Shown here one piece after another: positions 4,770-45,100 of a stretch of DNA of 64,000 bases. Within the stretch, counting starts at the first letter, position 1; each line of letters opens with the position of its first letter. Position numbers and translations under genes: made by a program. The stretch is from the sequence record PV764603.1. One strand, written 5' to 3'. The notes below the pieces were generated by a model. It was not told the DNA's origin, searched no databases, and saw only the letters and a program-made list of their open reading frames with translations.

Positions 4770-4771
4770 CC

Positions 4772-5914: not shown

Positions 5915-5926
5915 GGATTTCCCAAC

Positions 5927-6274
5927 ATGGCTTTCACTCCTTCCTCCGGCGTCCTCGGTCAGATCAGGCCCTCAGGCGCAACTGAGACTGTTCTCTACAC
6001 TTGCCCTGCTGATGCACGTGCCTCTGTCAGCATTACCTGCTGCAACACGGATAGCGGCTCTACCACTGTAACGGTCAAGGTGAGGTCAGGTTCCACGTCC
6101 ACTGCTCTTGTGAGCGGTGCTCAGTTGGCACCCGCAGGTGAACAGGGACACTCAATCGACATTCGTGCTCTGATTCTTGGGCCGGGCCAGTCGGTAGCAG
6201 TCACTAGCTTCAGTGGTACTGTAGATTTCAGCGCAATCGGGTACACGGCGCCTTCCAACGTCGTTGCGTTCTAA
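5927..6274 (+). CDS. Small beta-rich virion protein (115 aa)
   Basis: GAGG RBS, beta-rich sequence, located between fibre genes. Confidence 0.6.
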   Translation: MAFTPSSGVLGQIRPSGATETVLYTCPADARASVSITCCNTDSGSTTVTVKVRSGSTSTALVSGAQLAPAGEQGHSIDIRALILGPGQSVAVTSFSGTVDFSAIGYTAPSNVVAF

Positions 6275-6284
6275 GAGGTGACCG

Positions 6285-8570: not shown

Positions 8571-8595
8571 GGACATTGGGCACAGGGACGTGCTC
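8569..8595 (+). promoter_or_regulatory. Tandem ANGGA sites with GCAC-AGGGAC-GTGC hairpin (CsrA/RsmA-type site)
   Basis: ACAGGGACGT matches (A/U)CANGGANG(U/A) exactly; a second AAGGAC lies 15 nt upstream. Confidence 0.6.
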
Positions 8596-8612
8596 CTTTT
8601 TAGGTAGAGGCT

Positions 8613-10004
8613 ATGTGGATCACCCCTCAGAATCAAACTCTTGATGACACGTTCGATCCATACTTTCCGGGTACAACTCGGTGGTATGGTTACACCGGCA
8701 TCCTCATCAACAACACGCAAGACACCTACGATCGGTACGCTCCTTTGCAGTATGGCAGGCAAGCTCCATCCACGGCGATCCTTGCGCAGAATCAGGTAGA
8801 CCTGAATCAGATTTACGCAGCCCGAGGTACAGCAGGCTACCTGCAAGGTATCTCTATCCCAAATTGCTACGTGGGCTGCTCTGGCGTTACCATCAACGAT
8901 CTTCTCGCTGCTCGATGCACCATCATCATCAAGAACGACGGTACGTGGCAGCAGTGGTTCTATTCCACCAACTACAAGACGGATAGCCCGGGTGCATATG
9001 CACCTCCTAATCGTGGCATCCCTCGAACCGAAACCAACTTCAGCAACGGACGCATGAACGCCGCCGGTAACTGGGCACAGATTCCGTTCGCTGGTGTGGG
9101 TAACAACTACGAGACTTTCTGCCACGCTCCTTGGGCCCCATACGAAAGCAAGAACCCACCTGATCTAGATTGGGGTACTGCCGATCACTATAATCGGTAT
9201 GATGCTGCACTCATCAACTATATCTGGCACAACTTTAAGGGCCAAGGACAGTTCGGTAGTGCTAGTGATCCATACGTGGTGCAGAACACTACACAGAACC
9301 CCAACGAAGACATTCCTGACGGTCGGGTATACCGCATCGACCGCGACATTCGGTTCACCCTTGGCTTGACTGCACAGGGACGCAACAACGTTCGTTGGAA
9401 CTACGACGACAACGGCGCTCTGTCATGGTACAACCGAGCCAACTTTTCGGTGTACATTCAGACACCCGGTGGTGGTCAGCGTGTAGGTGCCACGTGCTTG
9501 ATGGCCAATGAGATTCGATGGAACGCATGGAATTGGACGGGTGGTAGCGTCGGCGGCGGTGGTGGCGGTGGTGGCGGTGGTTGCGTTGCTGCTACCAGCT
9601 ATGTTGACTTCCAAAAGACCGCAGGCACTGTTGAGGCAGGCGACTACCTCATGGGTATGACGGATGATCTGCAATTTATGGAGCTACACGTCCTGAGTGT
9701 GCGTCGTCAAGTGCAACCGTGTGTCCGACTCTACTCAAAGAGTGGCGTCACCCTTGTGTGCTCAAAGTCCACGCCGCTGACCCTACAGAACGGAGATTGC
9801 GTGCTGGCAGGCGAAGCACGAGCAGGTATCAAGCTTCCGGTACGATTCTTCGCGGCTGATCCTGAGTGGGAAACCATCGTCAAGATCGAGGAGGTTGGCA
9901 ACCGGGAAGTGATGCTCATCAACTGCGGTGGACAGAGCTATGCTGCCGGTGAGTTGCCGGGCCGCTATATCTACACCCACAACAACAACCAGCAGAAGAT
10001 GTGA
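8613..10004 (+). CDS. Fibre-tip adhesin (gp38-like position) with poly-Gly linker and C-terminal Hint (intein-like) domain
   Basis: Directly follows the S74 fibre; 10 Gly then CVAATSYV (Cys324), VRLYSKSGVTLVCS, WETIVKIEEVG.REVMLINCGGQSYAAG and IYTHN. Confidence 0.75.
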   Translation: MWITPQNQTLDDTFDPYFPGTTRWYGYTGILINNTQDTYDRYAPLQYGRQAPSTAILAQNQVDLNQIYAARGTAGYLQGISIPNCYVGCSGVTINDLLAARCTIIIKNDGTWQQWFYSTNYKTDSPGAYAPPNRGIPRTETNFSNGRMNAAGNWAQIPFAGVGNNYETFCHAPWAPYESKNPPDLDWGTADHYNRYDAALINYIWHNFKGQGQFGSASDPYVVQNTTQNPNEDIPDGRVYRIDRDIRFTLGLTAQGRNNVRWNYDDNGALSWYNRANFSVYIQTPGGGQRVGATCLMANEIRWNAWNWTGGSVGGGGGGGGGGCVAATSYVDFQKTAGTVEAGDYLMGMTDDLQFMELHVLSVRRQVQPCVRLYSKSGVTLVCSKSTPLTLQNGDCVLAGEARAGIKLPVRFFAADPEWETIVKIEEVGNREVMLINCGGQSYAAGELPGRYIYTHNNNQQKM

Positions 10005-10423
10005 TGATTGGTTCTGACCAACTCTCAGAAGTAGGTGTACCTGTCGGAGAGCTCTCCATTGGGAGGACTCTCGACGTATATGCGGTGGACGATCTACACT
10101 CGGTCATCCGCCTGAAAGGAACCGTCTCAAATCGGGTCCTGCGCAGTGCAGAAGTAGTAACCATCACAACTGCCTCCGGCGCTTCCGTTGTGGTGGCTGC
10201 CCAAAGTCGCCTCCCTGTCTATAGCGGACAGACAGCGCTGGCTAAGAATGTTGGTGCCAACATGATTGCTGTGATGGCCCCTAATGGCGCTTTTCGGTGG
10301 GAGCGGGTTGCCACCATCGAGGCTGGTACTGAGGCCGTAGTGGACCTCAAGTGTGAAGGCTACATAGTAGCCGGTAACGATCCTAAAACCGGGCTAATCT
10401 TGGTGTCTGGATCGCTGCCGTGA
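10004..10423 (+). CDS. Stand-alone degenerate Hint-like protein (139 aa)
   Basis: TGATG overlap with the adhesin; VGELSIG, VVTITTASGASVVV and WERVATIEAGTEAVVDLKCEGYIVAG align by eye with the upstream Hint, but Cys1 and HN are absent. Confidence 0.55.
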   Translation: MIGSDQLSEVGVPVGELSIGRTLDVYAVDDLHSVIRLKGTVSNRVLRSAEVVTITTASGASVVVAAQSRLPVYSGQTALAKNVGANMIAVMAPNGAFRWERVATIEAGTEAVVDLKCEGYIVAGNDPKTGLILVSGSLP

Positions 10424-10428
10424 CAGTC

Positions 10429-10466
10429 AATTTTACGTAAGGACATAAGGCTACGGATAGCAGCCT
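10429..10466 (+). promoter_or_regulatory. AATTTTA motif followed by two ANGGAY sites (AAGGAC; GCT-ACGGAT-AGC hairpin)
   Basis: Seen directly in the leader of ORF 10503. Confidence 0.5.
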
Positions 10467-10502
10467 CACATAAAGACACTTCCCAACAAATAAGGAACGA
10501 TC

Positions 10503-11180
10503 ATGCAACTCCAGGTTCTTCTCTCCTCTGTCGAAGCTCTCAAGTACGTTGCCGGCCTGCGGCTGCCTGCTGTCAAGGCGTTCAAGGTCAGTTCATACCT
10601 GCAACGTGCTCAGGTCCATATTGACGCATGGCAGGCAACTGGCCGGACTCTGGCCCAGCGCCACTACGGCGAAGACCAGCAGCCGCTGTCTCCCGAAGAC
10701 GCCGTACAGTTCAAGGCAGCCACTGACGAAGTGCTTGCTTCGGACGTCGAAGTCGATACCGTCAAGCTCCTGAGCTACCCGGCAGACTTCAAGGAGGAAA
10801 GTTTCATCCCCCTGAATATGGCCATCCTGTCTGAGCACTTTGTTGACGTTACCAAGCCCGAAGCTACTGGCGTCACCAAGATTAGTCGGGGTAAGCTGAT
10901 TGGCGCTTACATGTCTCTTCAACAGTTGGGTCAGCAGGAACTGCCGAAGGCTGTTGGTGAGAATCTGCTGTTCAACCTGATGACGGTCCGAGACCTACTG
11001 AATTCGTTCTCGGAGCGCGACGTTGAACTGACTAAGCAGGGCGATGCGAAGGCTCTGGAGGAATATCGTTCCGAGGAAGTGGAGGTCAACTTCTATCCCA
11101 TCAACATCAATGCGTTTGGCGATGTTGAAGTGGCTCCGGCACTTCTCGTAGATGCCGCGTGGCTCATCACTGAGGAATGA
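10503..11180 (+). CDS. Tandem-duplicated DUF1617-like helical protein (possible fibre assembly chaperone)
   Basis: Two similar halves: L..L...LP...A..L...L...... ..L...DVEV / EEVEV...I...F.D....P..L. Confidence 0.5.
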   Translation: MQLQVLLSSVEALKYVAGLRLPAVKAFKVSSYLQRAQVHIDAWQATGRTLAQRHYGEDQQPLSPEDAVQFKAATDEVLASDVEVDTVKLLSYPADFKEESFIPLNMAILSEHFVDVTKPEATGVTKISRGKLIGAYMSLQQLGQQELPKAVGENLLFNLMTVRDLLNSFSERDVELTKQGDAKALEEYRSEEVEVNFYPININAFGDVEVAPALLVDAAWLITEE

Positions 11181-11183
11181 TTC

Positions 11184-11729
11184 ATGGCTGAGTTTGACAT
11201 TGCCTATAGGCAGCAGAACATCGAGTCGGATTTGATTGATGATCCTACTGATCCTGGGGCTGTGACAAACTATGGTTGGAACCTTGGCTCCCTCCGCTTG
11301 GTGGGAGTCGAGGCCGACTACGAATTCGTCAAGAGTATGACGGCGGCAACTGCCAAGGAATTATACCGTCAGTATTTCTGGCATCCACTTTGGACCGAAC
11401 TCAAATGTCAGCAGGCGGCAAACAAGCTGTTTACCCTCGCTGTGACAACGTGCGCACCCAACAATTTCAACTTGGCCACTCGCTGTTTGCAGAGGGCCTT
11501 GTGGGCATCGGGCGCTTACGTGCATGAGGATGGAAAGCTTACAGAGGATGTAATAAGCGCAGCTAACGCCGTTGAGTGTTCGGCCCTAAGCTCTGCCATG
11601 CGTAGTGAAATGGCTTCCTACTACAGGACGCTTAACGCGGAGTATGAACTGAGGGTCAAGTACAAGCTGCCTGTAGTGGTCCCCGTGAATCGTTACATTC
11701 GCGTGTGGCTTCACAACTCCTATCGCTGA
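11184..11729 (+). CDS. Divergent GH108 (TtsA-like) muramidase with PG_binding_3-like C-terminus
   Basis: ESDLIDDPTDPGAVTNYGW vs canonical EGGY.NDP.DPGG.TNYGI; LQRAL...EDGKL...I.AAN. Confidence 0.75.
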   Translation: MAEFDIAYRQQNIESDLIDDPTDPGAVTNYGWNLGSLRLVGVEADYEFVKSMTAATAKELYRQYFWHPLWTELKCQQAANKLFTLAVTTCAPNNFNLATRCLQRALWASGAYVHEDGKLTEDVISAANAVECSALSSAMRSEMASYYRTLNAEYELRVKYKLPVVVPVNRYIRVWLHNSYR

Positions 11730-13245: not shown

Positions 13246-13472
13246 TGAAAACTCTCCTGATTATCGCCATCGCCTTACTTGCAGGCTGCGCAACTACTCC
13301 ACAAGTGGTGGCTCAAACCGACATTTGCGCTGGCTGGAAGGCCATCAAGGTCAACGAAAACGACGAATTCACGGATGGAACTGCCAAGCAGATTCTAGCG
13401 CACAATTGTCAAGGCGCAGCCTTGAAGTGCTGGGCCTATCCGAGGAATGATCCCCAAATTTGTGAACGCTAA
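13245..13472 (+). CDS. Outer-membrane spanin lipoprotein (Rz1-like)
   Basis: MKTLLIIAIALLAGC lipobox; additional Cys residues; TAATG overlap with the i-spanin. Confidence 0.82.
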   Translation: MKTLLIIAIALLAGCATTPQVVAQTDICAGWKAIKVNENDEFTDGTAKQILAHNCQGAALKCWAYPRNDPQICER

Positions 13473-13481
13473 GAGGTAACA

Positions 13482-15866
13482 ATGCCGCTGCCCACTTCCA
13501 TCCAACCCATCATTGAGAATACTCCGGACATTCTCAAAGCATGTGTTGAAGTCTATCAGTCCATGTCTCTGCTACAGGACCGGGGCTTCATGTTCTTGAA
13601 CGAGCAGATTGAATTGCTCACGTCTACGGGTCAGGTGGCACACGTCACCACTGCGTATGGTACTCAGGTTGAGTTGCCCACGTATCATACTCTGGCAGCC
13701 ACCTCGAACGCCTCTACGGAATTGGTGCAGCAGTTTCAGCGCCAAATCTACGACGTGTTCACTAGCAACAACCCGACGGTAATCATTAGTGACGGTCTTG
13801 GTAACGACACTCAGGTGATCGGCTATCAGACCATGAACGACAAGGTTAACGCTACGTCGGACGTGGCTTCTATCGCCAACACCAACGCGCTCAACGCGCT
13901 GGGTAAGGCCACCGAAGCGCTGAACCGTGTTACCAACTCCGAGCTCAACGCCAACGTGGCTTTGGCGAACGGCACACCACCCACCTATCAGACGCGTTCG
14001 GTTCTCGATACTGTTACGACGATGCAACGCAATAGTATCGCCTACGTGATCGCTGATCCGGTTCCCACCAACAACACCATCTACCAGTACAACGGTACTG
14101 CATGGACTCCTCAGTATGATCGGCTGCTGACCGCCCTAGGTAGTCCGCGTGGCTATCTGGCCCCACTCACGGGCGCTATCTACCGTACCTATCAGAGCAA
14201 GCTAGAATCACTGGTTACTCCTGAAGACGTGGGGGCCAAGGGTGACGGCACTACTGATGACGGTCCCGCCTTCATCGCCGTCGCTGCGAACGGGCGCCTG
14301 ATTGTGCTGTCCCCCAACAAGACCTACCGTATCACCTCCAACGCCACTGTAGGCAGCATCATGCCTAATGGCTCCAAGATTTCCATCGGTCCGGGCGCTA
14401 CCCTGACTTTTGATGGCCTGATCGTGGACGATGCTACGGTTGTGTTTACGGGTGAGGGCAACGCCGTCAGCAGCACTAGCGTCTACAGCGTTGGCTGGTT
14501 CGCAGGTGATAGCTTTAACGCCAAGTGGCTCGCCATGAAGCGTGGTTTCACCCAGCAGGTAGTCAAGTACGTCACGCTGCCGATGCCGCACCGCACCGAT
14601 CCTGCGGCAACTACCGCAGCTTCGGACGGTCAGGCACGTTGGAAGCTTACGGACTCTGTGGTCTTCAACAATACGGAATCTAACCTGATCGTCAATGCGC
14701 TGGGCGAATTCCTTGTGGACCAGTCCGCCTCGCTGTCGGCAGGTGCTTTCATCCTTGGCGAGCTGACTGCCCCCTCCAGCATCAACTTCCCGAACGGCTT
14801 GCGCGTCCTGTGTAACGGTAGTGCAACTTACGGTCTGCGTGTTCGCGGCGGTAGCAGCATCAGTTTTGAGGAACTACTGGTTCTGGATAGTGCCACCAAC
14901 TCCGGTATCCTGTGGGACAACTACAACGGCCCGAGTCACCGAATCAGCTTCGACCGCGTGCGTATCGACGGCTTTGGTGTGGCAGGCGTAACCATCCAAC
15001 CGCAAGGTGGCCCGAGCTACCCGAACCAGTCGCCTCCGATCACTTCGTGTTCGATCAATTCGCTGCAAACGCGAGGCGGTCGTAGCGGCTGCACGAACTT
15101 CGTCAAGATCGCGGGTAACGTGGATGGCCTGACCATCACCAACGTCCTTGAAGATCGTCCGTCGGGTAGCCTGCTGTTCGACTGGAGCGATTCCATGTTC
15201 TCGCTGACTAACACTCAGTACGGCACGATTGGTCGCTCCGGTTTGGAGATTGGTCACATTCAGGCGACCAGCACCCAGCTGCCCATCATCCGTGCGTTCG
15301 ACAGCACTTCCGCTGCTGACCCTGCGAATGGCAAGATCACGTTCTCGGTAGAGCACATCTATCAGGCGTATCAGCAGAACATCGTTCCGGTCATCATGGA
15401 ATACTCGAAGAACTGCACCATCGGACGTATCAACGCAGGACGCCCCACCTCTAGTCAGGAAGTGCTTGTCCGTATCTTCCGCGACTGCGAGGGTATTTCT
15501 CTGACCGGTACACACTACACCGCTGTTCGTAGTCAGGCCCTGCGTACTCAGTTTGACGGACGCTTCGGCATGGTGGACGTGGTGCAGCAGAACTCTGCGA
15601 TCTTCACGGATCTAAACACTGCGGCACTGACGTTCAAGTTTGACCTAATCTGCCTCACCTCCGCGTCTACTTACGCTTCGGGTTGGGCAGGCGCCAACGC
15701 TCTCGATATTCCCACGTCGCTGACCAAGAATATCAACGTTGCCCAGGGTCCGCTGGAAGGAACGACCGGCCCTGAAAGCACCATCAGCATCAGTGCTGCG
15801 GAAAACAAGTTCTTTGTGGAAAACCGAACCGGACAGAATCAGCTCGTTGCGGTTCTCATGTCCTAA
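13482..15866 (+). CDS. Tailspike/depolymerase with pectate-lyase-3-like beta-helix
   Basis: VTPEDVGAKGDGTTDDGPAF...IVLSPNKTYRIT motif followed by beta-helix-like repeats. Confidence 0.82.
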   Translation: MPLPTSIQPIIENTPDILKACVEVYQSMSLLQDRGFMFLNEQIELLTSTGQVAHVTTAYGTQVELPTYHTLAATSNASTELVQQFQRQIYDVFTSNNPTVIISDGLGNDTQVIGYQTMNDKVNATSDVASIANTNALNALGKATEALNRVTNSELNANVALANGTPPTYQTRSVLDTVTTMQRNSIAYVIADPVPTNNTIYQYNGTAWTPQYDRLLTALGSPRGYLAPLTGAIYRTYQSKLESLVTPEDVGAKGDGTTDDGPAFIAVAANGRLIVLSPNKTYRITSNATVGSIMPNGSKISIGPGATLTFDGLIVDDATVVFTGEGNAVSSTSVYSVGWFAGDSFNAKWLAMKRGFTQQVVKYVTLPMPHRTDPAATTAASDGQARWKLTDSVVFNNTESNLIVNALGEFLVDQSASLSAGAFILGELTAPSSINFPNGLRVLCNGSATYGLRVRGGSSISFEELLVLDSATNSGILWDNYNGPSHRISFDRVRIDGFGVAGVTIQPQGGPSYPNQSPPITSCSINSLQTRGGRSGCTNFVKIAGNVDGLTITNVLEDRPSGSLLFDWSDSMFSLTNTQYGTIGRSGLEIGHIQATSTQLPIIRAFDSTSAADPANGKITFSVEHIYQAYQQNIVPVIMEYSKNCTIGRINAGRPTSSQEVLVRIFRDCEGISLTGTHYTAVRSQALRTQFDGRFGMVDVVQQNSAIFTDLNTAALTFKFDLICLTSASTYASGWAGANALDIPTSLTKNINVAQGPLEGTTGPESTISISAAENKFFVENRTGQNQLVAVLMS

Positions 15867-19244: not shown

Positions 19245-19410
19245 AAATCCTCCGAAATTGGCGGTTAAACGTGCTATAGCTGGGATTGTCTAGATAGCCC
19301 CAGCAGTTAATTTTAGATGACAGGCAAGCTCCCCTTGAACGTAGCGGGACGCTTCCTACGCCTATTATTTACAGTATTGCCCTGAACCGATTTCCTCATA
19401 AGAGTTGCTC

Positions 19411-20643
19411 ATGGCCACTAGAGTTTCACGGCCGAAAAGGCCATATCTACCTCCCAAGAATAATCGGTTGGTGAGTGTAGGGCAGCGTAATCTACAAGCC
19501 CTGCATCACAACAATCGACAGAACGTAATCAACGCCATCAGCGCTACCGGGTACCCCATCACCCTCTACAACACTCTGAGGACGGGCATCAAATGTAGCT
19601 GCATGTTCGTACAGCAACCTCCGAACCAACTCCTAGATCAAGAGGGGAAGCTTTCGGAAAGCAATATGAACGCGCTTCTTGAGCCTAGCTCTGGCCTACT
19701 TGATTACGGACAAGACACGCTACCCTCTGAGAACCTGCAATCGGTTCTTCCGGTGGAGCGAATCGCGCTCAACGATACTTCGCGTCCGATCCTGAATCCA
19801 TACGAGCGCGCCGAACGCACTCAATTTGACCACATCGACACATCCACTGCACAGATGGATCGGATGGTGGACGATTGGGATACGCTCGAAATGGATACGG
19901 AGTTTGACGCAGTGCTGACCCCTGAACGCTTCATGGCTAATCAGGGACGCGCCTGCGCCGTGTGCTTCGGTACGGGTTACGTGGGTGGGTACGAACTGCT
20001 GCATGGCACTCGACTCATCCTGACGCCTCTGCATCCACATGAGCGCTCGGACACGATTGTACTTGATCGCAACGCCAGTCCTAACACGTTTGACAGCATG
20101 ACGGAAGGTTGGGTTCGTTTCCAAGTCACGCTGCCGCGAGGCACTGACTACGCCCTATTCCCCCGACTGTTCAACAACACGATCCCCATCCCCTACAAGG
20201 AATGGAAGCTGTTGGATAACGAGGGCATTCGGATGGACCCTGCACGTATCAAGGAATTGTGCATTGGTAAACCGATCTTCATTGAGGTACACGTAGGTAA
20301 GCTAGTGTTCACCCATCTGGAGATTCTTCTCAGCGGTCGGCCTCAGAATCAGCCGCTCAAAGCAGACAGTCCTGAAATCCAGACGATCACTGACGTGAAC
20401 CGAATGGACGCCAAGACGCCTGTTACGTGGATTCTCGGTGGCACCTACAATATCTCCAAGCGCGCTGTGGTGATTGACCACTTGCCGGGAATGAGTAGGC
20501 ACTGGCGAGTCAACGACATTCAAGCCCGTCGGGATAACCTCAACTGGATTTACGAAGAGACTCTATCGAGTCGATTGGTTGATCTGTACGAAATCACCCA
20601 ACTCCTACGTCCTGTCCGTTATGAAACGGCCCCACTAGACTAA
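19411..20643 (+). CDS. Virion structural protein, putative neck/head-completion
   Basis: GIKCSC ... CAVCFGTGYVGGY Zn-binding motif seen in large-myovirus neck proteins; first gene of a late block. Confidence 0.5.
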   Translation: MATRVSRPKRPYLPPKNNRLVSVGQRNLQALHHNNRQNVINAISATGYPITLYNTLRTGIKCSCMFVQQPPNQLLDQEGKLSESNMNALLEPSSGLLDYGQDTLPSENLQSVLPVERIALNDTSRPILNPYERAERTQFDHIDTSTAQMDRMVDDWDTLEMDTEFDAVLTPERFMANQGRACAVCFGTGYVGGYELLHGTRLILTPLHPHERSDTIVLDRNASPNTFDSMTEGWVRFQVTLPRGTDYALFPRLFNNTIPIPYKEWKLLDNEGIRMDPARIKELCIGKPIFIEVHVGKLVFTHLEILLSGRPQNQPLKADSPEIQTITDVNRMDAKTPVTWILGGTYNISKRAVVIDHLPGMSRHWRVNDIQARRDNLNWIYEETLSSRLVDLYEITQLLRPVRYETAPLD

Positions 20644-20651
20644 AACAACTT

Positions 20652-21959
20652 ATGAACAAGCTAAAGCGTCTCGGTCAGTCTACGGTGACTGCTCTCACTG
20701 ATTATCAGTTCCGCACTGTGGGTGAAGTGGAAAAGGTTCTGGCAAGCATGCCGCTGCCTACGATGGAAACTGCCACGTCCCTGCGTCGTCTCCCCATCTC
20801 CGACTCGAAGGAAGAAGTCCCCGTTGAGGACAACAAGCCAGAAGGTTGGACGCCGGGCCAGCGCCTGTCCACCAACAAGTTCAAGCATACTGGTGTTCCG
20901 GGTGAGCCGGTCAAGTTCAATCAGCGTGAATCGCGCGAGATTCGGGCCCTGACCAACCTGCACCACGACTTGGCGGATCAGGGCGAGAAGATCAACTCTC
21001 TCAAGGTCAACGCCCTAAATTCGTTCAAGGGTTCCAAGTTTGAATCTCAGATGGAACGCGCTCTTGGCCTGTTCGACAAGCGCGAGCGCGAACTGCTGGA
21101 ACACGAACTGGACGCACACGGTCGCCTGCACGAAATCGCAGAGAATGCGATCCCCGAGGACGCCCGTGTCACGTTCAACAAGACGGTCAACCCCATCGTC
21201 AAGAATCTGGCAGGCAAGTACAAGTCGCTGACCCGTCGCTACACCGTGACTCTGCTGCCGTCGGATCAGAATGTGGTGCAGTTCCAGCTGATCGTCTCGC
21301 TGGAGAAGCTCAAGAATGACAAGGGCTTTGTTTACCCGCACTTCTACATGATTGTCACCTGTATTATCGACAATCGGAATCATTACCACTACTACGTGGA
21401 CACTTCGACGGCCAAGCCGGTTCCCAATGTGACTCCTATCGAGCACGAAAGCCGTGGCTTCTCCTTCACCAAGGCTGATGACGGTCGCCGCCTGCTGCAA
21501 TCGCACCTGCTGGTGGACGAAAGCATCGACCTGAGTATCCCGACTGAACTGCCGCGCAGTAAGGAAGAGATTGAGGGCACCAAGTTCCGTAACGACAACA
21601 TCCGCACGGTCAAGGTCAACGCTGACGATCACACGATCACGTTTACCACGGATAAGGATGTTGGTCCTAAGCTGGTGGACAAGGTGGTAAAGGACATTCT
21701 CGCCGATCTTGCTGGTCTGTTCCTGAGCAAGAACCTGCATGAGAAGATGAAGCACAAGGTAACCAAGCTGAGCACCGGCGGTTACAAGGTGGTGGTGTGG
21801 GTTGGTACTCCGACTGCTCGCATCGGTAAGGAGTATCAGGCAGACAGCCATCGTCTCGACGTGTTGCAGCACGATCTGGGTCTGGATGAAACTCAGGTCA
21901 ATCAGATTCGCCGCATGCTGCGTGGCCGCTCGCAGATTCGTATTCCGGATCATGAGTAA
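20652..21959 (+). CDS. Hypothetical protein, putative processed head protein
   Basis: 435 aa; N-terminal TVTA, VLAS and METATSLRR motifs. Confidence 0.6.
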   Translation: MNKLKRLGQSTVTALTDYQFRTVGEVEKVLASMPLPTMETATSLRRLPISDSKEEVPVEDNKPEGWTPGQRLSTNKFKHTGVPGEPVKFNQRESREIRALTNLHHDLADQGEKINSLKVNALNSFKGSKFESQMERALGLFDKRERELLEHELDAHGRLHEIAENAIPEDARVTFNKTVNPIVKNLAGKYKSLTRRYTVTLLPSDQNVVQFQLIVSLEKLKNDKGFVYPHFYMIVTCIIDNRNHYHYYVDTSTAKPVPNVTPIEHESRGFSFTKADDGRRLLQSHLLVDESIDLSIPTELPRSKEEIEGTKFRNDNIRTVKVNADDHTITFTTDKDVGPKLVDKVVKDILADLAGLFLSKNLHEKMKHKVTKLSTGGYKVVVWVGTPTARIGKEYQADSHRLDVLQHDLGLDETQVNQIRRMLRGRSQIRIPDHE

Positions 21960-23190
21960 GCTTCGGCAGGTGCTGGTAGTGCAGGCGGACAAGGGCAACA
22001 ACGTAGATGACCCCAACATTACTCAGGACAGCACGGCGCTGGACAATCACGAACTGGCAATCTTCGGATTCGGCAAGAAGGCAGCGCATGAACGCAAGCG
22101 CACTGCTTTCTACAAGCACCAAGACTCCGAAGTCGAGCACCTGAAAAATCACGCACGCTCTACCGGCTTCAACGGACACATCATGCGCGGTGGCAAGTTC
22201 ACCAAACGATACATCGCGCACATCAAGAAAGTGAATGACCCTGCCATCGCCCACCGGGTCATTCAATTCCATCACAAGAACCAGCTTGGTGTGAAGCATC
22301 GCCTTGGCTATCATCATGGCTTTACTACCGCAGTAGTAGACGCCGGACCTGATCCGCACACGGATGACTTCCACGATCTAAACGCGGAGCATTCCATGAC
22401 TGAGAAGACTGAAAACGCTGCACTGTGGAACGGTGAAGCAACGCACACGATGGGTGACAACCTTGGCGAGATTATGGACGGTCGCCAGTTTGTTGGTACC
22501 TTGCTTGACTACGAGTTCAACGAAGTGCCCGTGTGGTATCAGCCGCGCAACAACACGCACTTCCGAGGTTCCTCCACACTGGTGATCCCTGATCGCACGG
22601 TGGCCTACGGTAACTGGAAGGTTCTGTCTACCAACGGCAAATTCCACGTGCGCAAGCTGCGTGCTTTCCTCGACAAGCAGCTGCCGCCCGACCGTCGTAC
22701 GCCTGACTACAAGGCACTCAAGATCGAAATCAATCCGTCGGAGCTGGTCAAGTCCGTGGACACCACGATCCAGCCCAAGACTCAGGTGGACCTGACGGGT
22801 GGCACGATGAAGGTCACTCAGGATCGCCGCCTGTGGGACGATGAAACTTCGGTACTGGCGAACGAACAGATCGACATGCTGCTCACTCAGATGACGGCGG
22901 CCGGCTTCAATTTTGTACGTAGCTACTACAGCGTACACTACGCGTTCTACAACGCCAAGCTGGATAACCACGTTCTGTTCAACCTCACCACCTCTCGGAC
23001 CAAGAGCATTCAGGAAATCGAGAATGCACTGAACGCAATCAGCTGGAACTTCCAGCCGTTGCCGTTCCAGTGGCCTGCGTACAACTACACCGCTCCCACG
23101 TGGCGCGCTATGGTGGAGTTGGATAACGGGCGTCGGCTTGTGATGGCATTGGACTACGCCAAGAGCACTTTGGTGTTCGACCTCCTGTAA
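21952..23190 (+). CDS. Hypothetical protein with His-rich N-terminal part (412 aa)
   Basis: Start re-assigned to ATG 21952, overlapping the upstream stop (ATGAGTAA). Confidence 0.65.
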   Translation: MSKLRQVLVVQADKGNNVDDPNITQDSTALDNHELAIFGFGKKAAHERKRTAFYKHQDSEVEHLKNHARSTGFNGHIMRGGKFTKRYIAHIKKVNDPAIAHRVIQFHHKNQLGVKHRLGYHHGFTTAVVDAGPDPHTDDFHDLNAEHSMTEKTENAALWNGEATHTMGDNLGEIMDGRQFVGTLLDYEFNEVPVWYQPRNNTHFRGSSTLVIPDRTVAYGNWKVLSTNGKFHVRKLRAFLDKQLPPDRRTPDYKALKIEINPSELVKSVDTTIQPKTQVDLTGGTMKVTQDRRLWDDETSVLANEQIDMLLTQMTAAGFNFVRSYYSVHYAFYNAKLDNHVLFNLTTSRTKSIQEIENALNAISWNFQPLPFQWPAYNYTAPTWRAMVELDNGRRLVMALDYAKSTLVFDLL

Positions 23191-23200
23191 CGGAACTTAT

Positions 23201-25144
23201 ATGGACAGGGAAAAAGAGCACCCATTCGACTATCATCTTCGGATGACGAATCTTGCTGCCAAGAAGGCGCACGAAGCTACGGCCCAAGGGCAGCACAACG
23301 AAGCGCACAAGTGGCATCTGAAAGTCCTGCATCACATAGGCGAAGCGCGCAAGCACAAGCCACCCACCATTCCACCTTCCATTGCCTCCGAGCTCGCTAA
23401 AATGGCACATAATTCCAAGATGCACACCGCATCTGCGAAGACTTCAACCCTACAGCATGCTCATCGCATCGTTAATGACCATGCTTCGGATATCCACGGT
23501 GGTGATTCGCACAGCGACGTTTCTAAGCGTCGCTTCACTCGTTATCAGCTCCGCGCTGGTGACCTTGAGAACGCTATGCACGAACTCAAGACCGCTGGTT
23601 TCAAGACTGCTACCAACCATGCCCCGAGAGCCAAGCATCACTTGGTAAACGGACGGACGCATGTTCTCATCAGTCATCCTGAAGGCAGGCACGAAACTCA
23701 CATCGTCAACGTTCAGCACGCAAGTGTTGATTCTTCTGAGAACTCCAACATGGCACTATCTGCGCAGGCACTCGCCAACCTCAAGTCTATGAATGAAACT
23801 GCCCGTGAGGATCATGAAGATCATGAGCCCTACGGCATGGAGAACAAGCCCCGTCCTAAGAAGACTACTGCAACCACGGAATCTCCTGCCGAACTCGCGG
23901 CGTATGGCACCTATCGGGGTTATCACCCGCATCGCGCCCTACATGACGAAGCGCGCCATCTGTTGGAATCCCGAGGCCACCACGCTAGTCATAGCTCTGA
24001 CCGCCTAGGTGCTCTCTCCGGGGTTAGGGGCATGCGTGTTCAACATCAAGTTGGCAGTACCGCAACTAAACTGCCCCGCCCCGAACAGCACGCCGAGCAC
24101 ATGGCTGCCACGCAAGAACTCCACAAGCTTGTTCAGAAGCATGGCTTCCAGCATACCTCTGGCGGTACATATCATCATCCTGAGACGGGCGCAAAGGTTC
24201 ATATCCATACCCCTCATGTAGGCAAGACGGGTGATAGTTATCTGGATCACTTCGATAATCATACCAATATGAGCATCACCCACAGCCTGAGTAAGCGAAA
24301 GGCTACGGCGGGTATGGAAGAAGAAGTCGCCCTGTTCAGCAAGGGTCCGAAGTTCGGCAAGAACTGGAAGGATCATGAGAGCGTGGACGATCACAACCAT
24401 CACATGCGCCATGCAGGTAAGCATCTTGCGGAGTACAACAAGTACGCTGCCAAGGTGAACGAAGCACGCGCCGCTGGTCGGGGCGACGAGGCTAACAAGT
24501 TGGCAGAGCGTGCTCAGCGCCACCTCGGGTGGAATCGCAACCACCTCGCACGCGCTCGCAAAATCTACCACAAGTCGATGGCCGCATTTGAGGCGGAAAT
24601 TGCTTCCCTGACTGTTGAAGCAGCCACTGGTTCTCAAAAGGCAGCAGACGCACGCGCTGACGCACGTAGGATGGAAAAGTTCCACGGGTATCACCGCCGC
24701 GCCAACGACGCTCACTCCAAGCTTGGTCTTCCGGGTGATCACGCCCACGCTCACCGTAGTGCTTCCAAGGACTACGGTACTGCCTTGCTGAATCATGTTG
24801 GTGTGCACGCCCCCGGCACCATTGATAGTAGTCCGGGAGAACACAAGGTAGGTACCCATCGTCACATCAAGGGCTCCTCTGCTTCGCACATCAGCCTGCA
24901 CTCTGTCCATAACAAGTTGACGGACCTAGGCTACGAGCACAAGGGCAAGGTAAATCATGATGACAAGGAACTGGAACATCATGAGTACCACCACCCGGAG
25001 CACAAGTTCACGGTGTCCCTGTATAAGCGTTCTACGCACGACGGCGGCAAGGCGCATCACAGTGTTGGCGCTATCGTACACCATGCACCTAATGGATACG
25101 AACACCATGCCAAGGGCCTGACTGCTACTAAGCCCACCACGTAA
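23201..25144 (+). CDS. His-rich modular protein, putative internal head polyprotein
   Basis: About 85 His in 647 aa by manual count; modules separated by ETA/ATA/VEAA motifs. Confidence 0.65.
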   Translation: MDREKEHPFDYHLRMTNLAAKKAHEATAQGQHNEAHKWHLKVLHHIGEARKHKPPTIPPSIASELAKMAHNSKMHTASAKTSTLQHAHRIVNDHASDIHGGDSHSDVSKRRFTRYQLRAGDLENAMHELKTAGFKTATNHAPRAKHHLVNGRTHVLISHPEGRHETHIVNVQHASVDSSENSNMALSAQALANLKSMNETAREDHEDHEPYGMENKPRPKKTTATTESPAELAAYGTYRGYHPHRALHDEARHLLESRGHHASHSSDRLGALSGVRGMRVQHQVGSTATKLPRPEQHAEHMAATQELHKLVQKHGFQHTSGGTYHHPETGAKVHIHTPHVGKTGDSYLDHFDNHTNMSITHSLSKRKATAGMEEEVALFSKGPKFGKNWKDHESVDDHNHHMRHAGKHLAEYNKYAAKVNEARAAGRGDEANKLAERAQRHLGWNRNHLARARKIYHKSMAAFEAEIASLTVEAATGSQKAADARADARRMEKFHGYHRRANDAHSKLGLPGDHAHAHRSASKDYGTALLNHVGVHAPGTIDSSPGEHKVGTHRHIKGSSASHISLHSVHNKLTDLGYEHKGKVNHDDKELEHHEYHHPEHKFTVSLYKRSTHDGGKAHHSVGAIVHHAPNGYEHHAKGLTATKPTT

Positions 25145-25983
25145 TGATCGGTGAACGTCTCGCGTACCCAACTGGATATGGCTTCCAGTTGGGTATTCGC
25201 ACAAGTGAACGTACCATGTGGTCAGATGACGGGCGCACTGTTCCTCTGGATCATAAGCCGCAGGTAGTTGCCAATCCTATCAACTGCCCGCATCCAATCC
25301 CCGAGGATCAATTGATCCCTGCTGATTGGCGCAATCTGCTCACGGCCAAGCTTCGGTGTCCTGCTTTTGGTACGCAACTTCTGTACGGCATGTGGGCGAC
25401 CATCGCTCACCTGAGCAACTTCAAAGCTGCACAGACGCCGTTGATCGAAATCACGGATGATCTACCTGCGCATAACCTTGGCAACTTCAACATTGTCCAC
25501 GGTCGGCCTCGCATACAGGTAGCCAAGTCGCGCATCTACACTTACGCGGCGCTGGCGTCGATTATCGCCCACGAAACTGCGCACCAAATTCAACGCACCG
25601 TGTTCAACTCTTCGGAAGAGTCCCACGGCGAACTGTTCGACAAGATTTGTAGGGAGATTACCTCCCGGACTGGCATTGCGATCCATCGTAGTGTCGATTT
25701 TGTTGGGGACAGGTCATTCGCTGTTAGCGATCCCCTGCCTAGCAAGTACCCCATTTACTACATCATCGCTGATGGGCGGGTATCGTACACGGATAGTCAT
25801 AGTGAAGTGACGGAAATAATCACTGCTCCTGACGCTATTGATGCAGACCTCCAAGTCTACAAGAGCCACGACATTAGCTTGATTGACTGGCTCCGTCCTG
25901 AAACTGACCTGAAACGATTTACCCGAGTTCGCCCGGACGTGCTAAAGGTCATCGCACACAGAGGCACACGCATTTACCCATGA
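25144..25983 (+). CDS. SprT-like zinc metalloprotease
   Basis: IIAHETAHQI (HExxH) followed by ESHGELF; upstream NLGNF..RPRIQVA strand typical of SprT. Confidence 0.8.
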   Translation: MIGERLAYPTGYGFQLGIRTSERTMWSDDGRTVPLDHKPQVVANPINCPHPIPEDQLIPADWRNLLTAKLRCPAFGTQLLYGMWATIAHLSNFKAAQTPLIEITDDLPAHNLGNFNIVHGRPRIQVAKSRIYTYAALASIIAHETAHQIQRTVFNSSEESHGELFDKICREITSRTGIAIHRSVDFVGDRSFAVSDPLPSKYPIYYIIADGRVSYTDSHSEVTEIITAPDAIDADLQVYKSHDISLIDWLRPETDLKRFTRVRPDVLKVIAHRGTRIYP

Positions 25984-27986
25984 GCAACATTCACGATTTC
26001 ATCAAGACCCAGCTGCTGGCTGCTGCCCATTTCCAAGAAACGCTGGATGCGGGTGGCAAGAAGTGGCTCAAGAGTGGTGGTATCGCCGACGGTCGGAAGT
26101 TCCTAGAGGAACGCAAGTTCCCTAAATCGGTCATCAAGGCATACGATACTGCCATGAAGAACGTCCTTGCAGGTAAGGACTTTGAGGAAGACGTTGATCC
26201 GCATTTGCAGGAAGTACAGAATGCAGTGAAGGAGCGTCTGCCCAAGCTGACCAAGGACACTTCTATTCCGATCGCAGACATCAAGACTCTGAAAGACGTG
26301 AGTCTGATCCTGCGCACTGAATCGGACTCTGCATGGGCACGTGTCGAGAAGGACATTGGCCGACTGCGTGACGAAGACCTCAACCGCATCATCGCTCCTG
26401 CTGTGGAATCCTCCAGCAAGTACGTCAAAGACCTCAAGGCAGCGTTCAAGAAACTGACGGGCAAAGATGGTACTGACTTCCGTGACCTAGAAGAACTGGC
26501 TGATCTTGATACTGATGAGTATCGGGAAGCAGTCAAGAAGATCATGGGCAAGAAGCCGGCTGCTGCTAAGGAATTCACCAAGGCACGCAGCGAGTACACC
26601 AAGGCCAGCAAGAAGGCCCACATGGCTCATGTACGTGCTTCCGGCAGTCACCTGATGGACGTGGAGACGGCCAAGAAACACCTTGAGTCTAAGGGCTTCC
26701 GTCACTCCATCCCTGAAGGCTTCAAGGGCAAGCTTGATGAAAACGGACGTATCCACACTGAGCATGGTGAACCCATCGCCGGTGGTATCTCCGGCACCGT
26801 CAAGATGAATCCGAAGTACGAGAAGGGTTCTAGCGTCAATGTCCTGACCTACTATCCTCCGGGTGCGAAGACGCCGCAGTACCTGTTCACCGCAGGTGCC
26901 AAGGCTAACGCCATCCAGAAGAAGAGTCAGAAGGTTGACGAACTGTCCGACAAGATTGGTGACCTGCGTAAGAAGTGGGGCGCTGACCTGAACAGTAAGG
27001 ATCCGAGCACTCGCATTGCTGCTGCCATTCTCGAAGCCTGCTACCACACGTCTGCACGTATCGGTAATCTGAGCAACAAGAATGATGGCATGACGACCTT
27101 GAAGGGTAGGAATGTCAAGGTCAACGGGGATACGGTCACCTTCAGCTACACTGGCAAATCGGACCAGCAGCAGAAGCACGTCATGAAGGGCGACGATCCC
27201 ATTTCCAAGAAGGCTGTGGAAATCATCAAGGCCCTCAAGGAAAACGCGAAGCCTGACGACCTGCTTTTCCGCAACAAGAATCGCCGCGTCGGTAGCCGTC
27301 AGGTCAACGATTACTTCACCTCCCTCGGTTCCCCCACCACGGTGCACAAGATGCGCCACGTTCGCGGCAACGCGATCATGAAGGAAGAACTGAAGAAGAA
27401 GCCGAAGACTGACGACGACAAGAAGATCACGGCCTTCCTGACTGCGGCTCTGGCCAAGGTTGGTGAGCAGCTGGGTCACTTCAACAAGGGCGAGGTCACC
27501 TTCGCCACTGCCCTGCAATCCTACGTCTCTCCGTCAATCGTTGAGAAGTATTATGACAGTTACAACATTCGTCCGCCCGCACGCATTCAGAAGGTTATTG
27601 ACCAAGCCAAGAAGGACAATGGTGAACCGACTACTAAGTTGCAGGACTTGCCGCATCACGGCGACGTGGCGGAAAAGCCTAAGGTACCTCGGGCGGTTAA
27701 GCGTGTAGCAAAGGAAGAAAAGGAAGCACCGAAGCCGCGTGTAGTGAAAAAGGTGGAGAAGCCTGCACCGAAGCCGCTGCGTCAAGTCAAGAAGGTGGAG
27801 AAGCCTGAACCCAAGGAACGCAAGCCCACACGCACGGTCAAGCACATTGAGCTGGGTCCCCTGTCTGCACAGCCTGTGAAGACGCCAGCTTGGTTCCAGA
27901 AGTTGAGCGGTAACGCACAGCGGACTTACATCAAGGAAAATCCGCACACCAAGTTGAAGCCCACCAAGCTGCCGGGCTCGAAGTAA
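25980..27986 (+). CDS. Type IB DNA topoisomerase with long N-terminal and K/P/E-rich C-terminal extensions
   Basis: Catalytic pentad motifs ARIG (R), YTGKS (K), HKMRH (R), QLGH (H), QSYV (Y); also TPQYLFT and PDDLLF. Confidence 0.88.
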   Translation: MSNIHDFIKTQLLAAAHFQETLDAGGKKWLKSGGIADGRKFLEERKFPKSVIKAYDTAMKNVLAGKDFEEDVDPHLQEVQNAVKERLPKLTKDTSIPIADIKTLKDVSLILRTESDSAWARVEKDIGRLRDEDLNRIIAPAVESSSKYVKDLKAAFKKLTGKDGTDFRDLEELADLDTDEYREAVKKIMGKKPAAAKEFTKARSEYTKASKKAHMAHVRASGSHLMDVETAKKHLESKGFRHSIPEGFKGKLDENGRIHTEHGEPIAGGISGTVKMNPKYEKGSSVNVLTYYPPGAKTPQYLFTAGAKANAIQKKSQKVDELSDKIGDLRKKWGADLNSKDPSTRIAAAILEACYHTSARIGNLSNKNDGMTTLKGRNVKVNGDTVTFSYTGKSDQQQKHVMKGDDPISKKAVEIIKALKENAKPDDLLFRNKNRRVGSRQVNDYFTSLGSPTTVHKMRHVRGNAIMKEELKKKPKTDDDKKITAFLTAALAKVGEQLGHFNKGEVTFATALQSYVSPSIVEKYYDSYNIRPPARIQKVIDQAKKDNGEPTTKLQDLPHHGDVAEKPKVPRAVKRVAKEEKEAPKPRVVKKVEKPAPKPLRQVKKVEKPEPKERKPTRTVKHIELGPLSAQPVKTPAWFQKLSGNAQRTYIKENPHTKLKPTKLPGSK

Positions 27987-27993
27987 GTAATAC

Positions 27994-28030
27994 CCCACCG
28001 ACTAACCCTCGGTGGGTTCTGTCTTTGCTT
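27994..28030 (+). terminator. Probable intrinsic terminator
   Basis: CCCACCGA-CTAACCC-TCGGTGGG followed by TTCTGTCTTTGCTT. Confidence 0.65.
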
Positions 28031-28046
28031 TGTAGGAGAATCAACA

Positions 28047-29006
28047 ATGCCTGTTCGTATGCTGCAAGGTATCGCCAAGAAAGCGGGTACCACGCACGAC
28101 CACGCAGAGAAGATTTGGGACGATAGCAAGAAAATCGTTGATAAGAAGTTCTCGGAAGATGACCCGAGCTACTACCCATACCTGACAGGGATCGTCAAAC
28201 GTCGCCTAGGCTTGTCGAAAGGTGAGAAGGCGATGTTCGACTCCCAAGACTCTACTAACGAGGAAGCTGACGTGGAAGAAACCGCAAAGAAGAATTGGAG
28301 TCAGGAAGTAACGGACAACGAAAAGTTCCATCCAAAGGAAGGTATCTTCAAGCAGAGCTCGGAGAAGATCGCCAAGTATCTGCTTAGTAAGGGTAAAGGA
28401 AAGGCCATGAGCCGCCTCACCTTCTACATCAACCGGGCTGGCAAGTCGCTGAGTCCTGAAGATCGTAATCGTCTTGAGCGTGCCAAGAAGATTATCTCCA
28501 ATGCTACTGGCAAGGAAACGGCCAAGGCGCACGACTATACCCCGCAGTACAAGACGCCTGAACAAATCGACAAGGGCCTGCGTATTACGGACAAGTTCTT
28601 CCGCACCATCTACTTCCCCAAGCTGGATAGCGACGGCAAGATCGTTGGCTACGATGAAGAACAAGTCAGTTCGGTGGACTTCGTGTTCCTGCAATCTGAT
28701 CCCGACACTGATCCTGTGTGGACTGATCCCCACACCAGTGCGGTTGTCAAGGCGAGCACCCTGCATCACTACATGGTTCACCACGCAACCCCTAACGCAC
28801 AGCGCCGTCGTCGGAACCTGCTGCAAGCTTACGCATCGGCAACCAACTTCAATGGCCCGATCATGAGCAACGGTTCTGTCACCGCTGAGTTCATGTGTCA
28901 CATGCACGGCCATAGCAGCATTGCTATGGCCGAAGTAAGCCGCTCCTTTGAGTACCACAACCGAGTTCATGCTGGCGTGGATGACGATCTGATTGCCTCC
29001 AGCTGA
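28047..29006 (+). CDS. Multi-module protein containing a DUF3175-like domain (putative head protein)
   Basis: KNWSQEVT...EGIF...EKIA...AMSRLTFYINRAGKSL...RLERAK matches the DUF3175 pattern; flanked by EETA and KETA. Confidence 0.65.
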   Translation: MPVRMLQGIAKKAGTTHDHAEKIWDDSKKIVDKKFSEDDPSYYPYLTGIVKRRLGLSKGEKAMFDSQDSTNEEADVEETAKKNWSQEVTDNEKFHPKEGIFKQSSEKIAKYLLSKGKGKAMSRLTFYINRAGKSLSPEDRNRLERAKKIISNATGKETAKAHDYTPQYKTPEQIDKGLRITDKFFRTIYFPKLDSDGKIVGYDEEQVSSVDFVFLQSDPDTDPVWTDPHTSAVVKASTLHHYMVHHATPNAQRRRRNLLQAYASATNFNGPIMSNGSVTAEFMCHMHGHSSIAMAEVSRSFEYHNRVHAGVDDDLIASS

Positions 29007-30603: not shown

Positions 30604-30746
30604 ACTAGTCGGGTAAACCTTTCAAATTAGCCGGGTAAGGGTGCCTCAAATACGGTACTTGGCAGCTAATTTTACTGTGAAGGCGAGGGCTATTCCTCCG
30701 TGCTTTTCAGGTGCAGGGATTCACCACTTCCTATGGCCTCAACTCA

Positions 30747-43219: not shown

Positions 43220-43948
43220 ATGCGCGGCATCTACATTTCGACCTTCGCTACACAGAAGACGCAGGACCGTCTTTCCTATCTTCTCGCGCAGGCAGCCTCC
43301 GCTGGCATTCCCGCCCTGCTTCCGAACGATATTCACGTCACCCTAGCGCACGATAGGGATACCTTGCACACGCCGCCGGAGTTGTCCGCAGAGTCCGATC
43401 CTCTGCGCATCTACACTGCACGTGTGTTGATGGTGGAGCAATGGGAAACCGGAAACGGCAATCCCATTCTCGTCGCTTCACTGTTCTGCCCTGAACTGCA
43501 CGAACGTTGGGAATACTGGCGATCCCTCGGGTTGGAGTGGGACTTCCCCACCTTCCGTCCACACTTCAGTCTCACCGACGGAATCAAGGGTATTCCGCGA
43601 AAGGATGTTGCCAAATGGTGCCGCATCTTCAACGAAGCCCTGCAAGATTTTGAGTTTGAATTCACCCACGAATACGTGCAATACATTCGTGCTGACGCCT
43701 TCAAGGACCCGACCGATGACGACGAGGAAGACCTTGACGGCGATGAGCATCCTGTAGAGTCGAGCACTTCGCACAAGACGAAAGGCGGTAAGAAGAGCAC
43801 CATCCTGCTTGAGGGAGTGCCTGTTCACCGGCCCAAGTTGAGTGACCATGAAGCTCGCAGCATGAAGAAGTTTGGCTTCAACGCACACGGTATCATGGAT
43901 CGTGTCCATGACCTAAGGAACGATGATGACGAAACCGAAGAAGAGTAA
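43220..43948 (+). CDS. Acb1-like (T4 57B-like) 2H phosphodiesterase, candidate anti-CBASS
   Basis: GIYIS, IHVTLAHDR and EQWETGNG..ILV.SL..PELHERW...RSLGLEWDFPTFRPHFSL parallel T4 Acb1 GLYVA, IHSTICYSR and EVWKTQDG..LV..L....L..RH...RALGATHDFDDYTPHITL; two HxT/S motifs. Confidence 0.8.
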   Translation: MRGIYISTFATQKTQDRLSYLLAQAASAGIPALLPNDIHVTLAHDRDTLHTPPELSAESDPLRIYTARVLMVEQWETGNGNPILVASLFCPELHERWEYWRSLGLEWDFPTFRPHFSLTDGIKGIPRKDVAKWCRIFNEALQDFEFEFTHEYVQYIRADAFKDPTDDDEEDLDGDEHPVESSTSHKTKGGKKSTILLEGVPVHRPKLSDHEARSMKKFGFNAHGIMDRVHDLRNDDDETEEE

Positions 43949-44725: not shown

Positions 44726-45100
44726 ATGCCCATACGGAAAACGGGAACGGTCAAGGTCAACCGCCGCTCTGGAGGAACCCATCGAATCGTTCGGGGCAAG
44801 TACACGGGCACTAAGGAAGGGTGGCGCTCCCTGTCGGACAAGATCAAGAAAAGAGACGGCTGGTGCTGCCGCAAATGTGGCAGGAACAAACTGGCTGTGC
44901 GCGCCCGAGGTGACTTCCTAGAGGTTGACCACATCATCCCGATTTCCAAGGGCGGCACTGATTCTCCCAGCAATCTATGGACGCTTTGTAGCACCTGCCA
45001 CGGAAAGCGTCCCGGCCATAAACACCTGCAAAAACGTAGGCAACCAAATGCGAATTCTCCAAAACCTGCGCCATACCGGATCGGCTCCTACTCAGGATAG
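44726..45100 (+). CDS. HNH endonuclease (HK97 gp74/McrA-like)
   Basis: W..L...IKKRDGWCCRKCG...LEVDHIIPISKGGTDSPSNLWTLCSTCHGKR. Confidence 0.92.
   Translation: MPIRKTGTVKVNRRSGGTHRIVRGKYTGTKEGWRSLSDKIKKRDGWCCRKCGRNKLAVRARGDFLEVDHIIPISKGGTDSPSNLWTLCSTCHGKRPGHKHLQKRRQPNANSPKPAPYRIGSYSG

Follow-up and report, generated by a model that had tools for sequence, protein, structure and literature searches.

Why does Xanthomonas phage PhiXhv-16 carry a gene for an SprT-type metalloprotease that overlaps its gene for a type IB topoisomerase (TopIB)? The two genes lie in a stretch of 64,000 nucleotides from record PV764603.1, which was analysed as a whole and is called the window here. The record is the genome of a 229 kb virulent jumbo myovirus of a lettuce pathogen (100% identity over 6 kb around the pair), and four near-identical relatives of PhiXhv-16 are known. 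Its annotation names the open reading frame (ORF) at 25980-27986 'topoisomerase' and the ORF at 25144-25983 'hypothetical protein'. A paper on PhiXhv-type phages mentions neither the protease nor the TopIB gene and contains no virion proteome (PMC13340338). Our answer, which is built from sequence comparison and gene order, is that the two proteins would form a functionally coupled pair in which the protease clears TopIB trapped on phage DNA. We give this reading a probability of about 45%, and we regard the clearing of adducts as plausible. The features of the pair, in window coordinates, are as follows.

25144-25983, + strand: predicted SprT-like zinc metalloprotease gene, 279 amino acids (aa), XYR93598.1; based on Pfam, the invariant metal site, an AlphaFold2 (AF2) model and the ratio of nonsynonymous to synonymous substitution rates (dN/dS)
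25570-25626, + strand: active-site segment, from HETAH (aa 143-147) to the third zinc ligand H161, which is followed by G; translation checked
25738-25980, + strand: C-terminal alpha/beta domain of the protease (aa 199-279), common to PaBG-type SprT; based on AF2 secondary structure and hhalign
25980-25983, + strand: ATGA stop/start overlap of the two genes, with ATG at 25980-25982 over TGA at 25981-25983
25980-27986, + strand: topoisomerase IB gene, 668 aa, XYR93599.1; based on Pfam, PHROGs, PDB and dN/dS
25980-26879, + strand: phage-specific N-terminal region of TopIB (aa 1-300), which aligns across 14 of 14 full-length phage TopIBs and has no Pfam match
26880-27614, + strand: TopIB catalytic domain (aa 301-545), with pentad codons verified and mapped onto 2f4q
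27615-27983, + strand: basic C-terminal tail of TopIB (aa 546-668, isoelectric point (pI) 10.2), whose last 30 or so aa form a conserved terminal motif

The upstream gene is predicted, from sequence and model, to encode an SprT-like zinc metalloprotease with a fold closest to that of SPRTN. Its score against the Pfam SprT-like family (PF10263) is 25.0 bits (E 1.8e-5), just short of the cut-off of 25.6 bits, and three members of its own family, P0004, P0005 and P0008, pass that cut-off with 28.4, 30.8 and 27.9 bits. The residues H143, E144, H147 and H161 are invariant in seven family members with identity down to 20%. Two relatives were found by a word-indexed search of 5.8 billion proteins, and an exhaustive profile search of 1.84 billion representative proteins returned five true relatives along with one spurious match, the 2143 aa PKD-repeat protein P0007, which was rejected. 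A sequence search of the PDB with the protease gave no match. In the AF2 model (pLDDT 77) a zincin core stands between a small beta domain at the N-terminus and an alpha/beta domain at the C-terminus, and Foldseek matched the model in the PDB to human SPRTN (6mdw, E 1.3e-5; 6mdx, E 2.5e-5) and to nothing else below 1e-3. The TM-scores against SPRTN are low (0.37 and 0.55) owing to a different orientation of the domains, and identity in the structural alignment is 14%. Among predicted viral structures the best named match, at rank 2, was gp89 of phage PaBG, and the further fold matches include many SprT-like proteins of phages, baculoviruses and giant viruses.

The downstream ORF matches Pfam Topoisom_I (PF01028) over aa 307-515 with 70.6 bits (E 1.6e-19; cut-off 23.7). 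It also matches phrog_23460 with an E value of 1.4e-89, aa 53-546 covering profile positions 60-564 of 565, and has PDB matches to 2f4q and 6z01. The catalytic pentad consists of R360, K393, R459, H500 and Y515, with codons at 27057, 27156, 27354, 27477 and 27522, and is invariant across 15 sequences. A HMMER alignment places it on R137, K174, R239, N280 and Y289 of chain 2f4q, which we take to be the catalytic residues of Deinococcus TopIB. Identity to the homologues of cultured phages is 24-31%, and the family matches 22 of 50,697 phage records. One metagenome scan with TopIB gave two loci, and scans of IMG/VR with the single protein and with a five-sequence alignment found no TopIB relatives. 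The original prediction had called the two genes an SprT-type protease and a TopIB with an intact R-K-R-H-Y pentad, and had called TopIB uncommon in tailed phages; on each of these counts it holds, the protease through its invariant metal site and its fold.

The basic tail of TopIB and its terminal motif are limited to the window clade (the window and lineages L010, L014, L017 and L018). The motif, at 27900-27983 of the window, has no Pfam match, and in the tailless lineage L021 it forms the N-terminus of a separate small ORF (144-521); it could be a docking or targeting peptide. On the metagenomic contig of L021, TopIB is encoded as two consecutive ORFs, one for the N-terminal part and one for the catalytic part, with one break between them that may be a true split or come from assembly or a frameshift.

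The ATGA overlap predicted for the two genes is present at 25980-25983, and to judge from this arrangement the protease and TopIB genes are translationally coupled. Against a metagenomic relative of 84-87% identity (84% for the protease), the dN/dS value is 0.08 for the protease gene and 0.10 for the TopIB gene, so both are real genes under purifying selection. Both proteins keep intact, selectively constrained catalytic residues. The G+C content of the two genes is 0.53 and 0.54, and that of the window is 0.54.

The pairing is conserved well outside PhiXhv-16. We counted 19 SprT lineages from three subtypes (A, B and C); the sampled lineages apparently all fall within one broad jumbo-phage group and are not statistically independent, and the gene calls on metagenomic contigs are the source's own or simple ORF calls. 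TopIB lies on the same strand and at most five genes away in 17 of the 19. Three layouts occur: SprT then TopIB; SprT, an MmcB-like nuclease, thymidylate kinase, then TopIB; and TopIB then SprT. SprT and TopIB are immediate neighbours in 9 of the 17 linked lineages, and the genes overlap in five. The original prediction staked itself on the linkage being conserved, which it is in these 17 lineages and through three gene orders.

Type A is the family of the window. TopIB is downstream of SprT on the same strand in all seven of its lineages. The two genes adjoin in the window, L010, L014, L017 and L019, one gene intervenes in L018, and three genes separate them in L021. The four-base overlap is common to the window, L010 and L014, and the spacing is 2-4 bases in L017 and L019. 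Among the relatives returned by our searches, the window-type SprT family was never met away from TopIB.

Type B proteins, of about 445 aa, combine a KMPT-N domain with SprT and occur in PaBG, Lu11, HRDY3 and four metagenomic lineages. All seven have the order SprT, MmcB-like nuclease, thymidylate kinase, TopIB, and most have one or two small ORFs at or near the thymidylate kinase gene. Profile comparison by hhalign joins types A and B with a probability of 92% (E 5.5e-7) over 137 columns that run from the SprT core into the C-terminal domain. An AlphaFold model of type B (pLDDT 82) also finds SPRTN (6mdw, 6mdx) as its sole PDB match below E 1e-3.

Type C proteins are about 445 aa long as well, with the SprT core in the C-terminal half, and their gene order is reversed. 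The SprT gene is directly downstream of TopIB in L027. In L028 two tandem, overlapping type C paralogues follow TopIB directly (8688-11338). In the Burkholderia phage BCSR5 (L008) the order is TopIB, GIY-YIG nuclease, a tiny ORF, SprT; the nuclease gene, at 7361-8239, is LEM-3-like (E 1.6e-17). Since the order switches between types A and B on one side and type C on the other, the proximity of SprT and TopIB has survived rearrangement. The pairing has been kept across deep divergence as well as changes of gene order, and no other gene stands directly beside TopIB as consistently as SprT does. The proteins encoded just upstream of TopIB in RSL1, BCSR5, RHph_N46 and PaBG (gp85) are protease-sized; they were compared by profile and rejected as unrelated.

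Counted from TopIB, SprT is close by in five of nine cultured phage lineages (PhiXhv, PaBG, Lu11, HRDY3 and BCSR5). Nucleases linked to the repair of crosslinks or DNA ends recur beside SprT, namely MmcB-like, GIY-YIG and Mre11/Rad50-like proteins. In the Rhizobium phage RHph_N46 (L031) the stretch 1784-8670, 11-17 kb from TopIB, holds Mre11-like and Rad50-like genes with an SprT-like ORF on either side (26.2 and 19.2 bits), and this cluster is a second repair-type neighbourhood of phage SprT proteins. NUDIX hydrolase genes stand beside TopIB or SprT in L018, L019, L021, L027, L028 and RSL1 (ORF109). Genes for ADP-ribosyltransferases (ADPrib_exo_Tox/ART) are found beside the pair at 13033-14169 in L010 and at 11338-12084 in L027.

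TopIB enzymes act through a covalent tyrosyl-DNA intermediate, which can be trapped at damaged DNA. In eukaryotes, the DNA-dependent metalloproteases SPRTN (human) or Wss1 (yeast) degrade trapped Top1-DNA intermediates, and SPRTN needs DNA binding. In our reading, the phage TopIB would relax supercoils of the 229 kb genome via a covalent 3'-phosphotyrosyl intermediate at Y515, and the co-translated SprT-like protease would degrade TopIB, and possibly other proteins, irreversibly trapped on phage DNA. A small peptide adduct would be left over, removable by nucleases or excision repair. The substrate of the protease would be DNA-bound TopIB, reached on the DNA. As the window-type protease is without an evident DNA-binding part, it may be recruited through TopIB itself. 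A phage with its own 668 aa TopIB would gain from having its own protease, which would turn the trapped enzyme into a peptide, and from nucleases that finish the work. Bacterial excision repair is limited to small peptide adducts and does not extend to DNA crosslinked to large proteins, and according to a 2026 review there is no clear evidence that bacteria repair DNA-protein crosslinks by means of a protease (PMC13705206). A picture of protease first and nuclease second agrees with the repair nucleases that adjoin SprT. In its fullest form the proposal is that a dedicated jumbo-phage protease clears trapped TopIB and that the nearby nucleases (MmcB-like, GIY-YIG, Mre11/Rad50-like) remove the peptide-DNA stub, which would make this the first such repair system outside eukaryotes. 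We hold that version only tentatively.

Several findings weigh against a dedicated role in clearing TopIB. The link between SprT and TopIB is not universal. In two of the nine cultured lineages, Motura and RHph_N46, SprT is 10-24 kb from TopIB; the Motura gene, of type C, is 24 kb away on the opposite strand. Another type C gene, in L029, has no TopIB within 10 kb. No SprT was found in RSL1 within 6 kb of TopIB, in positions 1-50,000 of its record or by tblastn with three SprT queries, and none was found within 20 kb of TopIB in NCTB. SprT-like proteins are also common in viruses whose named examples fall outside the TopIB-positive records, and therefore roles independent of TopIB exist. The protease of the window, with a pI of 6.6, has three cysteines but no CxxC pair, and it shows neither a basic region nor a zinc ribbon such as bacterial SprT has; it therefore also lacks the parts by which SPRTN binds DNA. 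Structure comparison identified no DNA-binding fold in its C-terminal domain. These properties weaken the original idea of a DNA-activated protease. The pair is also the 3' end of a run of six co-oriented genes, which starts at a divergent junction near 19405 and whose first four members are:

19405-20643, + strand: ORF C5, a PHROGs family of unknown function
20652-21959, + strand: ORF C4, no recognisable function
21886-23190, + strand: ORF C2, no recognisable function
23201-25144, + strand: ORF of 647 aa, no recognisable function

C5, C4 and C2 accompany the pair throughout the window clade. C5 and C4 are near SprT or TopIB in L027 and L029, and C5 alone is in L028, RSL1 and RHph_N46, where a C5-family ORF lies just upstream of the SprT-Mre11/Rad50-like cluster. 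Because these families travel with the pair, inherited synteny of a core genome segment may explain part of the linkage, and the description of the pair as a self-contained module is not supported.

Two lineages have a different HExxH protein, not of the SprT type, encoded just downstream of TopIB. In L023 it lies at 13314-13901 and matches the zinc-peptidase family PF07737 above the cut-off (E 4e-7); in NCTB (L006) it lies at 7671-8525 and its match is only weak (E 0.019). The two showed no mutual similarity by blastp. As NCTB has no SprT nearby, its HExxH protein could be a replacement protease.

Other roles for the protease can be read from the same neighbourhoods. It might be a general DNA-maintenance enzyme that acts on any protein stuck on phage DNA, or in another repair step, and be found with TopIB through a shared DNA-metabolism cluster. 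The SprT-like ORFs beside Mre11/Rad50-like genes in RHph_N46, at their distance from TopIB, agree with this, as do the SprT of L029 beside an HNH gene with no TopIB nearby, the MmcB-like, thymidylate kinase, NUDIX and GIY-YIG genes of the same neighbourhoods, and the many viral SprT-like proteins outside TopIB-positive records. A shared cluster does not readily account for immediate adjacency in 9 of 17 linked lineages with overlap in five, a closer association than any other gene of the cluster shows, nor for a window-type family that was never seen apart from TopIB. We consider general maintenance unlikely. The protease might otherwise act on free TopIB and involve no covalent adduct, by trimming the N-terminal region or the tail or by timing the destruction of the enzyme, such as its clearance before packaging. 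Translational coupling would keep the two proteins in matched amounts, a DNA-binding part is missing from the window-type protease, and TopIB carries two clade-specific appendages, the N-terminal part being a separate ORF in L021. All of this would suit such processing, but the proteases of types B and C are basic (pI 8.6-9.8) and match SPRTN, repair nucleases recur beside the same two types, and tailless TopIBs (L019 and the PaBG type) still keep the protease. Processing of free TopIB is in our view quite improbable.

Iyer et al. (2021) took the patchy distribution and variable copy number of SprT-like peptidases in jumbo phages as a sign that these attack host proteins (PMC7824862), and the protease could be such a counter-host weapon, its linkage to TopIB being incidental. 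Copy number does vary, with two tandem genes in L028 and two genes in RHph_N46, and ADP-ribosyltransferase genes lie next to the pair in L010 and L027. However, this leaves the same-strand proximity to TopIB in three layouts unexplained, strong purifying selection and a stable single copy in the window clade are unlike an arms-race gene, and PADLOC gave no match; we doubt strongly that host attack is its role. The original prediction placed the pair inside the head-protein block and proposed that it acts at packaging or injection. The placement is only loosely true. The pair does lie in the late or structural part of the PhiXhv-16 genome, but the four co-oriented ORFs before it have no recognisable function, and the closest genes that can be identified as structural encode a head-fibre-like protein (ORF at 29782) and the connector (at 30711). 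Packaging of the pair in the capsid would suit this position, and in PaBG the protein encoded next to TopIB, gp83, belongs to the virion, with the major capsid gene at a distance of 4 kb. Against it, neither TopIB nor SprT is among the 14 major virion bands of PaBG, a method that sees abundant proteins only (PMC7412058). The genes around TopIB in RSL1, Motura and BCSR5 belong to nucleotide metabolism, and the upstream ORFs showed no similarity to structural proteins in Pfam, PHROGs and profile searches. Action at packaging or injection finds no support and is, of the readings considered here, the one we believe least. The clearing of trapped TopIB from phage DNA remains the explanation that we prefer.

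The stop codon of the 647 aa ORF overlaps the start of the protease gene in the sequence TAATG at 25142-25146. Profile searches of Pfam, NCBIfam, PADLOC and the PDB gave no match for C5, C4, C2 or the 647 aa ORF, and PHROGs matched C5 alone. C4 and C2 were compared as possible paralogues, and this was rejected. A scan for sigma-70 promoters found fewer sites than in shuffled sequence. Two features follow the TopIB gene.

27994-28016, + strand: G+C-rich hairpin of 8 pairs (6 of them G-C), 8 bases past the TopIB stop; a consensus match alone, with a weak T-run after the hairpin
28047-29006, + strand: DUF3175-containing ORF, 319 aa (Pfam DUF3175, E 4.2e-11)

The hairpin is a possible candidate for the end of the transcription unit. 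ORFs with DUF3175 adjoin TopIB or SprT in L010 and L029 (by Pfam) and in L014 and L021 (by blastp clustering).

Further into the window, an ORF annotated as hypothetical (43220-43948, + strand, 242 aa) matches the Pfam family Acb1, a protein directed against the cyclic oligonucleotide-based antiphage signalling system (anti-CBASS protein), with E 1.1e-16 over aa 2-125, and is likely a counter-defence gene on the strength of this match. At 44726-50482 an HNH endonuclease ORF is followed by that of a 1635 aa SNF2-like helicase. In L029 the type C SprT gene directly precedes an HNH gene, and a 1504 aa SNF2-like gene lies about 2 kb further on.

The components of the pair were known before; the conserved pairing and the DNA-repair reading are new. 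Full-text literature searches found no report of SprT-TopIB pairing in phages. The locus ties an SPRTN-like protease genetically to the class of enzyme that most often forms DNA-protein crosslinks in eukaryotes. It offers two overlapping genes with known catalytic residues, a small and concrete protein pair for an open question in bacterial repair. Three groups of jumbo-phage proteins listed as 'hypothetical' gain a working annotation from it, and a role can be suggested for the adjoining nucleases. If our reading is correct, protease-based removal of topoisomerase-DNA adducts, shown so far in eukaryotes only, would also occur in phages, and the SPRTN-Top1 repair axis would predate eukaryotic cells and extend beyond them.

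The nearest functional parallel is SPRTN/Wss1. The proteases share the SprT-type zincin fold, with HExxH and a third histidine about 14 residues further on, and the partner is in both cases a type IB topoisomerase. Unlike SPRTN/Wss1, the window protease has no zinc-binding subdomain, basic DNA-binding region, or ubiquitin-, PCNA- or p97-binding motifs. The eukaryotic coupling is known from function and not from gene linkage, whereas here it comes from gene linkage alone.

The nearest kin outside the window family are PaBG gp89 and its relatives, whose genes likewise precede TopIB on the same strand; gp89 already carries the annotation 'SprT-like domain-containing protein Spartan'. They differ from the window protease in their N-terminal KMPT-N domain and about 150 extra C-terminal residues, and in the MmcB-like nuclease, thymidylate kinase and small ORFs that separate SprT from TopIB. 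On the topoisomerase side, the catalytic domain and pentad are shared with bacterial or archaeal TopIB (2f4q, 6z01). The TopIBs of group 2.2 jumbo phages (Motura, NCTB, RSL1, Lu11 and PaBG) share these and also the phage-specific N-terminal region (phrog_23460), to which the window clade adds its basic tail of about 120 aa with the terminal motif.

In Iyer et al. (2021) the phage-specific TopIB of group 2.2 jumbo phages is treated in one section and their SprT-like peptidases in another; host proteins are suggested as targets of the latter, with no remark on the TopIB neighbourhood (PMC7824862). The protease described here belongs to the same superfamily as the SprT-like and ArdC-like zincin peptidases of jumbo phages and conjugative elements, and to the same phage group. 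In contrast to the role proposed for those peptidases, its neighbourhood points to DNA repair, not host attack.

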